The notes under the pieces are model-generated. The model was not told the origin of the DNA. It was given only the letters and a program-made list of their open reading frames with translations, and did no database searches. Shown here piece by piece: positions 22,805 to 55,825 of a DNA stretch of 64,000 nt. Source of the DNA: Dicyema japonicum (taxonomy: Eukaryota > Animalia > Dicyemida); contig RDEW01000048.1 of the NCBI GenBank assembly GCA_011109175.1, forward strand, positions 352,137-416,136. Reading direction: 5' to 3'. Numbering within the stretch: the first letter of the stretch is position 1; every line of letters starts with the position of its first letter. A program made the translations under genes and the position numbers.

Positions 22805-23103
22805 TTTATTGAACCAGAAAACCACAGTCATAGCCAGAATGAAAAATTAAGGTGATCCCGGCCTTCTCAGCAGTCTTTGCATGCTTGGAGTTGAAAGAAG
22901 TGGCGTCCAAGAGATGGTTGTTGACTAATGGTCATTTTTGGATATAATTTAGGAGATATCTGGCGCCACCAGAGATGGTGAACCACACGACGCATGCTAA
23001 TAATTCAAGCTCCTTGGAACTAAAAGGGAAGAGGAGGAACAGAAGAATCAAATAAAAAAACTTAAATTTAAGTAGCAACACGTTGGCGCCAGACGGCACC
23101 ATA
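22805..23103 (-). mobile_element. Short non-autonomous retroelement (SINE-like), copy 3: structured head plus LINE tail
   Basis: Shares the GCC..GGCGCC..GTG leader, the TTCTGTTCCTCCTCT tract and the structured core with 23578-23905; ends in a GGGATCACC-TAA LINE tail. Confidence 0.6.
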
Positions 23104-23189
23104 ATTGTAAAAAATGATATTTTGATATTAAAAAACAATTAGCTATTTTTCTGTTGCCTTAGTTATTACATATTATATTGATGAATAGG

Positions 23190-23420
23190 TTTGAAACCAC
23201 AAACCATCACTAAGAACTGCTTAAAAGCCTCAAGAAAATCAACAATGTTCATCTTTTCAACGAAAGAAACGAGGATCAAACCACAAGTCAACTTGAATGA
23301 CTTCCAAATCCTAACCAAAGTAAACCCCTTTATCCTCGCAGTTACCCTTGATCCATTTGTGTCATTCATACACCTATTAAACCTGGTAGCTTCGAGGATA
23401 TAAAAAAAGATGGTAATGCT
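23190..23420 (+). mobile_element. LINE RT thumb fragment
   Basis: NPFILAVTLDPFVSF resembles the P.ILGVTFD..L.F motif. Confidence 0.45.
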
Positions 23421-23577
23421 GAAGATTTTTCGCATTCATAGGTATCTCAACCCGTTTACTGAGCATCAAATTGATCTTCTCGCTATTAGCATATAGTAAA
23501 TTAGAACTGATATAGAACCGATGCCCTAGTCTTATTTCGATTCCCGAATGGAATACAATTTGTTACTGAGTATTATT

Positions 23578-23905
23578 ATTAATTAACCCCGGACACACCG
23601 AGAAAGAAGTTAAAGTAAACAACTAATTAAGTGTATCCAGTTTCCACTTCTACAGAAACAGAGTCCATCCGGAATCAGCATAAAGGGTAAGACGTCCATT
23701 ACATGCAGTCGTGGAAACCCCTCCAGTGGAGTGGGGAAGAGCAAATGATCCTTTTTCATGCCGGCCTGGCACTGGGCGTCACCTAGACAGGTGGATCACA
23801 TGACGCCATTCTATTGGGAAGAGAGAGGAGGAACAGACAAGTAAGCAGAAAAATTAAACTAACTAACCACGCAGCACCACACGGCGCCACGCGGCAAAAT
23901 CCTCG
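23578..23905 (-). mobile_element. Short non-autonomous retroelement (SINE-like), copy 1
   Basis: About 90% identical to 55508-55825; the last 60-70 nt match the 3' end of the LINE at 45345-46050. Confidence 0.75.
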
Positions 23906-24429
23906 TTACTGAGAATGCTAAACGTGGTGGTAATTAATTATTACTTGAAAGAATAACGAGATATAAAATTCTGAAGTCTCAGATTATGGAATCCTCCCCA
24001 ACATATGAAAGGAAATTATTCCCTTTATATCAATGCAGGATCCCAAGACTAAGTGGGTAATAAATGTTAATTCTGTTTTATGTATATTAGTCATATTAGA
24101 AAATAACCTAGTACCTCTTCTATTGCACAGTATTTTAGTATCAAATATAGGATCTCATAAGGTTTTGTGATTTCACGGAAATAGAAAGGAGTACAATAGA
24201 AACAGGTCAGTTTAACCTATTTCCACTGATTGGGCCAAACAGCTTTACAAATACTCTAAAATATTATTATCAACCAAAGAAGAATGTTGAGTTCTAAATA
24301 TTCTCCAGTTGCAGCAAAATACATGAAATGTATAACATAGTGTTAGATAAGGTTTGGTAAAATTATATAAATAAAAAATAAATAATAATTGTAATATTTA
24401 AATTTATTGAAGATTGTCGTGTCAGTGTT

Positions 24430-25051
24430 ATGGGAAATTTACTATCAACCTTACTTTCTAATTTTTCAAAACTGCTAGGAAAGAAAGAGTGCAGAATACT
24501 AATGGTAGGGCTTGACTCTGCGGGGAAGACGACAATTCTGTACAAACTCAGACTGGGAGAAGCAGTGACGACAATCCCGACAGTGGGTAGTGATATGAGT
24601 GAATGTAAGGATTCAACGTGGAAACGATGACTTATAAGAACATAATGTTTACAATGTGGGATATTGGTGGACAGGATAAGATTCGTCGACTGTGGAAGCA
24701 TTACTATCAGGGGTCGGCAGGTTGGTGATTGTGAATGAGATTAGCGTTAATATTTGTGATTGATGGAACTGATCATGAACGAATAGGGGAAGCCAGTAAT
24801 GAACTGGCGTCACTTATGCAAAGTGAAGAACTGAGAGGGATACCTCTACTGGTATTTATAAACAAATCAGTGAGTGAATGTAAATATTATAGGATTTGCC
24901 TAATTTGATGACAACAGAGTTTGTGGAGAAGAATTTGAATTTGAATACATACAGAGGGTCGAGGGTTGTCATTCTACAAAAGTCATGTGCTACAGCTGGT
25001 GATGGATTATATGAGGGACTCGACGAATTATCTAAAGTTCTTGCAAATTAA
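24430..25051 (+). CDS. ADP-ribosylation factor family small GTPase, 3 introns
   Basis: N-terminal [53 protein letters not shown]. Confidence 0.93.
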
Positions 25052-53083: not shown

Positions 53084-54114
53084 CGCAATACGCTCATATA
53101 TTTAAATTATATTTAATATTTTATTTACTATTATTATTTTAAATTTATTATTTTGTTGAAGTTATTTATTTTGTTACTTTAAAAGATTTAGTTATTTTTA
53201 CTGCCTTAGTTACTTTTCTTTTACTTGCAATATTCGCAGGTTTCATTAGTATGAATTGAATGAATTTGTCAATACATACTCTATTAACTATAAATATATT
53301 AAATACAATTGTGGTATAAGACATGTGTGATATTATGTATTTAACAAATGACGTCATTAATATGTACTTGATTAGTGGTGTGTTTACTAGGATTACACTC
53401 TCTGTGGTTATACTACGGAAATTTGTGAATTTTAATAATTTAAATAGTGATTCTCTATGGAGATATTTATATTATTTTTTGAGAATATGAGTGGTTTGTT
53501 ACTGAATGGATCCTTAATAATAATTGTCTTTATTGTTTCATTTATTTAATGATGAATCTAGCAGATAAGTCTCATTGTGGACTCTATATAAAAGATTTAC
53601 TTTGTTATAATCTCATATATAATACCTTCTCATTAAATTATCAATATTGTTCATAATAATCTACGATTTACTCAATAATTTCTGGCAGGTTTAAGTTATA
53701 TGACTTTGACTCACAGGGGTTATTTCAAAAGCAACTCCTCTGGAGACTTTCGGAGGATATCGCGTGCCACATTCGCCCAACATGGAAAATTTCCAAAAGC
53801 CGAGTTTACAAGATTGCGTCGGTACCAGGAAGAAACACTGGAAAAATGAGGTCGATACTGAGAGAGGCTTTAATCACTTGACCTTCCTGCAGAATTAGTT
53901 AATTATCATGGTGGGTTGTGTCATATAATGATTTTCGTTAATGATTGATTTTTGTGCTTAAAATATGAGTTGCTCAGGAAAAAAATTAAACGGTAATTTT
54001 AAAAAGACGTAATAGCAGTGACGTCACAGTTTATAAACTAATCGTTAAATATTATTCACTTTTTTAGTTCAATTAATAATTATTCAATAAACACAAACAG
54101 TTAACAACTACTAA

Positions 54115-54330
54115 AACTTCCTTTCAGTCAAGGCTGGTCGTTTTCAGAATTGAAAACGCATTTCCCCTTATGTAAGTGAATGCGATCAATAAGCCATCTC
54201 CTTATCATTTTCCTTCTTGCAATACTAGAGAGGATGGCATTAATGTTAATCTCCCCTGTTTTGCCAATGCCCGAATTTCAGCATAGCTTCTGAGTAGTTT
54301 GTTCTACAAAACCGATTTGGGAATTGTCTC
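54115..54330 (-). mobile_element. CRE-like RLE retrotransposon C-terminus
   Basis: IRGNAFSILKT-stop. Confidence 0.45.
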
Positions 54331-54379
54331 CCAATTCATCATATACGACTTCAATATAAAACACACTTACGGACGCCTT

Positions 54380-54960
54380 TGTTATGGATATATAGAAGGT
54401 CTTCGTCTGTTTCGAGGATACTCATAACTAAAAATATCTTTAATTCGAATTTACACCTGAACATAGTCGAAAAATTCTTAACTGGCCGACGTAAAAAAGT
54501 GCGGATCAGTAAAATTACTTCAAAATCAATTTTACTCCCAAATGGAGTACACAAAAGTCCCTTTATCTCATCTCTTTTTAATTTATTTCTACATTTGCCT
54601 ACTACCAAAGATCAGGACATCCTGTTATTATCTTACGCAGTCGATCTAATTATCGCTGCAAGAGATATATCTACCTCCGTGGCTGTGGCGGTGGTTCAGT
54701 CATATCTCAACCAGGTGTGTGACTGGCTATTTGCAAATATGCTGTCTGTATTTGAATCCAAATCTCAGTTCACCCTGTTCACTACAGACTGGAGATTTAA
54801 GGGTGGACTTTGGAAACAACCCTATTCCTTTTATGTGGATCCAGAAGATCCTTGAAGTAACTTTCGACTCTCTAATGATGTTTTCTAGTCACACGGAGGA
54901 AGTGTCAACCAAGGGGCTTCAAAGGTGGAACGTTAAAGTCATCATAAAGAATAACCTCCT
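54380..54960 (+). mobile_element. Degenerate LINE RT fragment
   Basis: FLTGRRKKV, LPNGVHKSP..S.LFNLF, LSYAVDLII and KILEVTFDS. Confidence 0.75.
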
Positions 54961-55507
54961 TCCAACTGTAGCTTGTATCAGTAACTCTACTTTCAAATTA
55001 TTGTGTCGACAATTGAATATGAATGTTCTGCCTGAAGATTTGGCTTTTTACTCTTCGAGGATTGAACGTATAAACTCTCTCAGACGTAAAACCACACCGT
55101 TCATGCAAGCTGACATCCATTCCCAGTCTCCTTTCTGAGTAGGCGAAGCTGAAAAATGGCTAGAGTTTCTTACGTTTCTGCAAGAAGTTAGAAACCCATT
55201 TAAAGAAAGGATGGTTCATGCAGAGGAATTCGGATCGACCATAAAGAAGTGCACCCCGATAGAATTCCTTTGCAGACAAAAAAGAGAATCTTCTGGAGGA
55301 CAGTTGGCAGATAAGAGATATGACCAATTAAGTGCATTAAAAATCAATAAAAATTTCGACTTTATTGACCTAAAAGGTCAAAATGAATATGGAGATATAA
55401 GCGGGAAATCAATAAACTAAGAAAACCACACAAGTCCGTGAAACTTAGTTGATTTCTGGTGTAATCGTGAGGAGCAACACTATGCAATTATGTCTGTGGA
55501 GATTTCA

Positions 55508-55825
55508 TTTATTAACCCCGGATACACATAGAAAAAATTTAAAGTAACCAACTAATTAAGTGTACCAGTTTCCACTTCTATAGAAACAGAGTCCATCCGG
55601 AATCAACATAAAAGGTGAGACGTCCATTACATGCAGTTGTAGAAACCCCTCCAGTGGAGTGGAGAAGAGCAAATGATCCTTTTTCGTGCCGGCCTGGCAC
55701 TGGGCGTCACCTAGACAGGTGGATCACATGACGCCACTCTATTAGGAAGAGAGGAGGAACAGACAAGCAAGCAGAAAATTTCAACCAGAAATTCAACCAA
55801 TTAACCACGCAGCACCACATGTGCA
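55508..55825 (-). mobile_element. Short non-autonomous retroelement (SINE-like), copy 2
   Basis: About 90% identical to 23578-23905. Confidence 0.75.

Follow-up and report, generated by a model that had tools for sequence, protein, structure and literature searches.

A covarying, probably knotted RNA module with the helix order of hepatitis delta virus ribozymes in the interior of Dicyema japonicum SINEs

Introduction

Why should a short retroposon carry, in its interior, an RNA fold with the strand order of the self-cleaving ribozymes of hepatitis delta virus (HDV)? The question is raised by a 64,000-nucleotide stretch of genomic DNA from the dicyemid Dicyema japonicum (assembly GCA_011109175.1, contig RDEW01000048.1, positions 352,137 to 416,136; the whole of it is called the window here). 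An initial annotation, made from the letters alone, had described in it a short retroelement in three copies, carrying a covarying structure with HDV helix order. The three minus-strand segments that it named (modules of copies 1 to 3 in Table 1) read exactly as it had written them, and its helices can be drawn in all three: P1 GGCGUC/GACGCC, P2 UGAUCC/GGAUCA, P3 ACC/GGU and P4 UGCC/GGCA in copies 1 and 2, and P1 GCGUC/GGCGC, P2 UGGUU/GACCA, P3 ACC/GGU and an A/U hairpin as P4 in copy 3.

Here we find that this module of 62-66 nt lies centrally in repeats that have the properties of short interspersed elements (SINEs) dependent on long interspersed elements (LINEs), and that two of its helices, P2 and P4, bear the marks of selection. 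The HDV-like folds of LINEs and the presence of LINE 5' ends inside SINEs were both known, each separately; what is unusual is a fold kept by compensatory change at an internal site, where cutting would do harm. The reading that we favour, and hold to be somewhat probable, is that a whole superfamily of SINEs that depend on LINEs has the module as its central domain, a selected pseudoknot in HDV order that would derive from a LINE leader and act as a structural cis-element that does not cut.

Results

Genome-wide searches covered the assembly of 67,542,437 bases in 377 contigs (GC near 0.37), and work at the level of sequence drew on the window and 64 genome loci (~267 kb; labelled L where one has to be named). 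Repeats make up 49% of the published assembly of D. japonicum (PMC6736024). Majority sequences were built, for comparison, for the non-coding SINE families only; LINE sequences were neither merged nor repaired.

The modules of copies 1 and 2 sit in repeats of ~310-330 nt that can be aligned end to end, and that of copy 3 sits in a divergent relative of these repeats, with common blocks along its entire length. What had been taken for an element in three copies proves to be a set of large families. Family A, a SINE of ~330 nt that includes copies 1 and 2, has at least 1,869 candidate copies genome-wide, and its best 40 genome copies are 94-97% identical to the query copy. Family B, its older sister and the family of copy 3, has at least 562 candidates (78-83% identity to the query copy among 40 scored matches). 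Family C has at least 880 (85-89% among 40 scored matches); it has no copy in the window and was found in the flanks of the fetched loci. Scans of the ~267 kb placed the module in relatives of family C and in several rarer families besides A, B and C (Table 1). One further match of the covariance model described below, at 58411-58467 (E = 0.45), lies inside LINE coding-like sequence and was judged to be due to chance.

These repeats are short, non-coding and present in high copy number, with target-site duplications and a simple-repeat tail, and families A and B each have a 3' end in common with a partner LINE, as expected of SINEs. In family-A copies a terminal …GGTGTATCCGGGGTTAAT leads into (TAA/TAAA)n. 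Of 27 such copies, 12 lie between direct repeats of 9-26 nt, the maximum in a mismatched-flank control being 8, and copy 1 is bounded by 9-nt duplications, CTCAGTAAC, at 23905-23913 and 23562-23570. Window positions 62338-62410, which overlap the stop of a LINE reverse transcriptase (RT) open reading frame (ORF), are matched by the final ~75 nt of family B. The module-bearing repeats are LINE-dependent SINE-like retroposons, present in thousands of copies; the view of the initial annotation that the element is a retroelement is supported by the target-site duplications, the A/T-rich tail and the tail held in common with LINE 3' ends.

Four parts can be recognised in these SINEs: a hairpin-forming head, a pyrimidine tract, the module, and a body that ends in a LINE-type 3' tail. 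The first nucleotide of P1, G1, is position 95 of family A and position 122 of family B. The structured RNA, which had been assigned to a SINE head, is thus found in mid-element, with 94 nt of family A or 121 nt of family B ahead of it. Copy 3 bears private mutations; the majority sequence of family B has a P2 of 6-7 bp (UGGUUC/GGACCA) and a P4 of 7 bp (AUAUAAU-CCUAA-AUUAUAU). A second small hairpin lies directly 3' of the module, with different sequences in A (CCCCACUCCACUGGAGGGG) and B (UCCAGAGGAGUUCCCCCUGGA), and could represent one more conserved structure.

The head is conserved between families A and B in the alignment, and its hairpin (Table 1) holds an E-box-like palindrome, GCCRCGTGGC, which is common to families A, B and C. 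No tRNA, 5S or 7SL signal was found in the SINE head, and no Rfam family matched over the heads. A tRNA origin was considered for them and rejected, ARAGORN calling 0 tRNA genes in the window and in five loci; the element had been described as a non-tRNA SINE, with which both searches agree. In family A, 7-23 variable bases separate the 5' target-site duplication from the conserved head (junctions in L002-L030), and some of these bases are common to a few copies, such as GATTAATGTTGTGG in L025 and L030. Variable bases that are partly common to few copies suggest that transcription of family A would start upstream of the head, at different source loci. In one locus (L033:2925-3010, minus strand) the module is preceded by a SINE head that looks tRNA-derived (TAGCCGAGTGG … GGGTTC), in which ARAGORN calls no tRNA; it may be another type of head on the same module.

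The fold itself was assessed by covariation. A loose descriptor of the HDV topology is unspecific, finding ~35 unrelated sites in 508 kb on both strands; bare helix order is therefore common by chance, and the weight of the argument rests on covariation and not on topology. As the initial annotation had proposed, pairing was counted over additional copies, by means of a covariance model built from A and B modules with P2, P3 and P4. In the alignment of its 73 matches, most rows of which are dead copies and whose cells count sequences and not events, the P1, P2 and P3 pairs are standard in 89.5% of 969 cells, a share that drops to 33-60% on sliding the 3' partners by 1-3 columns. Covariation reaches a score of 0.226, compared with 0.150 ± 0.008 in column shuffles, none of which (0 of 500) scored as high.

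Compensatory double changes are found in five of the seven pairs of P2. The first pair is A-U in A and C and G-C in B and in L059. Families A and B have U-A as the second pair, where C has G-C and L059 has C-G, and G.U as the third, where C has U-A. As the fourth, A has C-G and L059 has U-A, and B is divided between U.G and U-A. The distinct version of the module at L059:1191-1262 has three double changes and forms all six of its six pairs. Within family B (L032-L060), subfamilies can be told apart by one P2 pair, U.G (GGACCA) or U-A (GAACCA), where A has C-G; to judge by their sequences, they mark out a two-step compensatory path.

P4 has been replaced outright. It takes the form of four unrelated hairpin sequences, UGCC…GGCA in A, C and L033, AUAUAAU…AUUAUAU in B, GUGCA…UGCAC in L059 and UGUAA…UUACA in a fourth, degenerate module of the window (42997-43054), each with a terminal-stem shuffle p of 0.001-0.025 when segment ends are chosen by hand. 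Nested minimum free energy folds of single modules form P1 in family A, and P2 instead in B and C; they do no more than slightly better than shuffles (z -0.8 to -2.0), as expected for a pseudoknot, and were not used as evidence. On these comparisons P2 and P4 qualify as selected helices, and the covariation that the initial annotation had seen in three copies is borne out by the P2 double changes and the P4 replacements. A knot is likely, given that the conserved P1 of 5-6 bp crosses P2, with folds that alternate between P1 and P2 as the other possibility.

Does the module then qualify as an HDV-like ribozyme? Members of that class have a P1 of ~6-7 bp that starts at the cleavage-site nucleotide and a P2 of at least 5 bp (PMC3774820). 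In the module P1 starts with G and is 6 bp long in families A and C, 5 bp in family B, P2 has 6-7 bp in A, B, C and L059, P3 abuts P1', and a P4 hairpin is present in every family; the strand order is that of a nested double pseudoknot, P1-P2-P3-L3-P3'-P1'-J1/4-P4-J4/2-P2'. J4/2 starts with CGAAAAA in the family-A majority, UGAAAAA in a U subfamily, CCAAAAA in B, UCAAGA in C and UAAAGA in L059. The conserved core of L3 and P1.1 is missing: L3 reads UGUCUA in A, AUCUCU, with no G, in B, and UUACUGA in C. The L3 G matters, a putative R2 ribozyme that lacks it having failed to cleave (PMC3774820). P1.1, which had been thought to be retained between L3 and J1/4, is weak (A-U/G-C at best) and shows no covariation, and no single register suits all families. 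The module closes P1 with G-C, whereas HDV and CPEB3 close it with G.U.

None of the Rfam models of the HDV type (HDV, CPEB3, drz-Agam and others), which detect distant members weakly, gave a match with E ≤ 10, whether the search space was 1.5 kb, 81 nt or 91 nt. The best score of RF01788 against the entire genome was 18.6 bits, away from the module, and nothing credible was found. Rfam scans of the window, of 1.5 kb and of lone modules, with gathering and E-value thresholds, returned only a U5 snRNA and chance matches. The module is not at the 5' end of the SINE, and a 5' position is approached only by the degenerate module at 42997-43054 and by two headless elements (Table 1). That the module is an active HDV-like ribozyme is, on its sequence, not established. 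The initial annotation had left a choice between a divergent HDV-like ribozyme and a new structured RNA; a structured RNA that does not cleave fits better, and the lack of an Rfam match and of an L3 G in family B leave the ribozyme half of that choice unsupported.

Cleavage should also leave a footprint in the genome. If cutting were efficient, RNAs that begin at G1 and retain the LINE-type tail would be copied, and many elements starting at G1 would be expected. A family-A 30-mer that starts at G1 occurs 657 times genome-wide (at most 2 mismatches), and a 30-mer across G1 (14 nt upstream and 16 nt downstream), of which the upstream half is the less conserved, occurs 615 times, so that in family A ~94% of the well-preserved cores retain their link to the 94-nt head, which a cut at G1 would take away. 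The L026 headless element is uncommon: its 28 candidates, most of them partial, are too sparse to prove a 5' end at G1.

The variant base of J4/2 tells a similar story. The exact 23-mer is found genome-wide 224 times with C at the start of J4/2 and 84 times with U. Copy 1 has the U form, and its TG had been attributed to CpG decay; among its 30 nearest relatives, TG is present in 26, CG in 4 and CA in none, which marks the U as inherited by a subfamily that kept amplifying and not as independent decay. Since this subfamily of at least 84 copies did amplify, mobility does not depend on the would-be catalytic C. No sign of self-cutting of the module at G1 is seen in the genome.

Where could such a module have come from? 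The degenerate module at 42997-43054 keeps P2 (UGGUUC/GAAUCA) and P4 (UGUAA/UUACA) and has lost L3, P3' and P1'. No SINE head lies upstream of it, and a LINE endonuclease ORF follows (Table 1). Logan contigs of four sequencing runs diverge at 42996, the sense strand reading …GAAACTGACACACTCTTCCCCCACTC, and this leader, which is that of other copies of the LINE, resembles GCTCTTCCCCACTCCA, the block just 3' of the SINE-A module. A LINE origin of the module is plausible and shown only in part by these sequences. Just upstream of the LINE-adjacent module begins a repeat of very high copy number (43124-43200), where contig depth is at its maximum for the part of the window covered by the contigs. 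As to the LINE RT ORF at 61050-62360, its best relatives are metagenome fragments, only 37-39% identical, and one protein of Octopus sinensis. The latter is the best named relative, with 49% identity over 39% of the query; octopuses are hosts of dicyemids, and LINE/SINE lineages common to host and parasite, or DNA of the host in the assembly, are conceivable.

Other features of the window are listed at the end of Table 1; the two ORFs at 2278-2880 and 4245-4922 are probably exons of host genes.

Table 1. Positions of SINE copies, modules, LINE sequences and other features in the window and in the genome loci (L).
Feature	Position	Strand	Remarks
SINE family A copy 1, full length	23571-23904	-	~334 nt; A/T-rich (TAA/TAAA)n tail; 94-97% identity to best 40 genome copies
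Pseudoknot module of copy 1	23746-23807	-	covariance model 73.5 bits; J4/2 begins with U
Head hairpin of copy 1	23866-23895	-	13-bp stem with G.U pairs; -22.9 kcal/mol; z -4.5; 0/200 shuffles
SINE family A copy 2	55507-55821	-	older, ~91% to family majority; head partly lost
Pseudoknot module of copy 2	55674-55735	-	J4/2 CGAAAAA, majority form
SINE family B copy 3	22797-23112	-	~87% to family majority
Pseudoknot module of copy 3	22929-22993	-	82 bits; P4 A/U hairpin; J4/2 CCAAAAA
Fourth, degenerate module	42997-43054	-	covariance model 27.6 bits, E 1e-4
Distinct version of the module	L059:1191-1262		scans of 267 kb
Single old module copies, other families	L008:360, L019:2335, L033:2856, L057:1311, L058:3068, L060:899		scans of 267 kb
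Two headless short elements	L012:735, L026:2410		family-A homology starting at G1; scans of 267 kb
LINE endonuclease ORF	42514-42921	-	PF14529, E 9.6e-9, above cut-off; ~75 nt downstream of fourth module
LINE-like 3' end	45357-45419	-	matches last ~65 nt of family A (…CTCGGTGTNCCCGGGGTTAT-TAAAATAAA)
LINE RT ORF (61050-62360) with 3' end to 62410	61050-62410	+	3' end matches SINE family B tail
LINE fragments	11835-13328	-	RT 12546-13328; endonuclease 11835-12350
LINE fragment, RT pieces	62555-63601	+	
U5 spliceosomal snRNA gene	16515-16610	+	RF00020, 48.3 bits, above gathering score
ORF with NAD(P) transhydrogenase domain (PNTB_4TM)	2278-2880	+	
ORF with RNase H1 domains (Cauli_VI + RNase_H)	4245-4922	-	

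Discussion

The reading of the module as a non-cutting structural cis-element would account for these observations as follows. Selection on source genes would keep the nested double-pseudoknot fold, leaving covariation in P2 and exchange of the whole helix in P4, with P1 and P3 simply conserved. The module would most probably descend from the 5' leader of partner LINEs, a place at which HDV-like ribozymes usually set the RNA's 5' end. This descent draws part of its support from the LINE-adjacent module of the window and from the headless elements, and the SINEs would be composites of a head, a LINE 5' end and a LINE 3' end, like those described in PMC5786205. Inside the SINE the module would be catalytically weak or dead, cutting either not at all or too rarely to leave a trace, and it may have been retained as a cis-element of the retrotransposition template, for instance as a binding site of a LINE protein or as a fold by which the RNA is organised or protected. 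A fuller claim, that an HDV-type fold was captured from a LINE leader, is now a non-cleaving or head-regulated conditional cis-element, and is needed for the mobilisation of several SINE families, can be put forward only tentatively.

Several observations weigh against this reading. P1 varies on one side only, through wobble pairs, and has no true compensatory double change, so that a knot, in preference to folds that alternate between P1 and P2, is argued from conservation. P3 is nearly invariant, with just two of its three pairs in family C, and the alignment in which pairs were counted had been fitted to P2 and P3. The link to LINEs comes from one degenerate copy of the module; at least 20 other genome copies of the endonuclease LINE are homologous to it only from 42996 downwards, and two gapped patterns for an intact module before the LINE leader gave 0 matches and 1 match, the latter a SINE copy. 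Finally, J4/2 still opens with C-G-A-A in the family-A majority, as it does in genuine HDV-like ribozymes, and this C form may have kept residual or conditional cleavage.

If the module did not come from LINEs, it could be a structured SINE domain with no descent from HDV-like ribozymes, its helix order due to chance and its role lying, for example, in RT recruitment, RNA stability or promoter function. A supported fold with weak catalytic signatures is what this explanation predicts, and the frequency of the bare topology speaks for it, as does the failure to recover intact module-bearing LINE 5' ends from the LINE copies and pattern searches above. We nevertheless consider it rather unlikely: a headless module adjoins a LINE endonuclease ORF, and several families have C and an A-run at the position of J4/2 in HDV. 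There is also precedent on both counts, SINE bodies from RTE or Vingi 5' ends, with bipartite headless derivatives, being known along with HDV-like ribozymes in the Ingi and RTE clades (PMC5786205).

A further reading is that the module is an active HDV-like ribozyme, at least in the C-form copies, which cuts 5' of G1 and frees a headless RNA. To its credit are the correct helix order, a 6-bp P1 that starts with G and a 3-bp P3 that abuts P1', the C-G-A-A-A of J4/2 in the family-A majority and the CC or UC with A-run in B and C, a P4 as variable as in known members (PMC3774820), and the rare headless elements that begin at G1. A 5' ribozyme would truncate a SINE that has a head, as remarked in PMC5786205; 94% of family-A cores remain joined to theirs and the U-variant subfamily was still amplified. 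The L3 of family B has no G, as in the R2 candidate that did not cleave (PMC3774820); P1 is closed by G-C in place of G.U, P1.1 is A-U/G-C at best, and no Rfam model matches. Taken together, these points make an active ribozyme improbable. Still less credible is that no structure was selected, the complementarity having been inherited and the apparent compensation having arisen by chance among related dead copies: dead copies from two families do make up most rows of the alignment, column shuffles can be beaten by related sequences in the absence of structure, and P1 and P3 hardly vary, but the double changes of P2 are at the level of families and affect at least four lineages, L059:1191-1262 combines three of them with six of six pairs, P4 was replaced by unrelated hairpins four times, and pairing collapses in the slid controls.

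Were the module indeed a non-cutting cis-element of LINE descent, a ribozyme scaffold would have been reused as a protein-binding or template-organising domain. With thousands of copies in several families, it can be tested whether the delta fold is kept for a non-catalytic role, such as recognition by the LINE machinery, or as a tuned, weak or conditional ribozyme, and natural variants (C or U in J4/2; L3 with or without G) offer ready-made controls.

Among known systems, the 5' HDV-like ribozymes of R2, RTE and L1Tc/Ingi have the same nested double-pseudoknot strand order as the module, and they resemble it in the 6-bp P1 that starts with G, the 3-bp P3, the variable P4 and the association with LINEs (PMC3774820, PMC3185411). 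A C and an A-run stand at the start of J4/2 in most module families as well, but U replaces this C in a subfamily of A and in L059. Unlike these ribozymes, which lie at LINE 5' ends, the module is 94-121 nt inside an element whose copies keep the upstream part; its L3 lacks the conserved pattern, its P1.1 is weak, Rfam gives no match, and the genomic footprint argues against cleavage. The Pr77/L1TcRz fold of the trypanosomatid L1Tc, NARTc and SIDER elements (PMC3383444) offers a parallel in that an HDV-like fold of ~77 nt at a LINE 5' end is common to LINEs and their short non-autonomous relatives. Pr77, however, is at the extreme 5' end, doubles as a promoter and is active in vitro (PMC3383444), whereas the module is internal.

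The bipartite SINEs derived from RTE and Vingi (SINE2-1_AMi, SINE2-1_ACar; PMC5786205) share with those of D. japonicum the succession of a head, a segment resembling a LINE 5' end and a LINE 3' tail, and in both cases headless derivatives made of 5' and 3' parts occur alongside. They differ in that the head is here a 13-bp hairpin, neither tRNA-like nor 5S-like, and in that across several families the putatively LINE-derived middle part persists in the form of a covarying pseudoknot. The CORE, V, Deu, Ceph and Meta central domains are likewise short central blocks found in several SINE families that differ in their flanks and tails. Those domains are conserved in sequence; the module of D. 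japonicum, in contrast, is conserved as base-pairing, while the sequences of P2 and P4 have changed.

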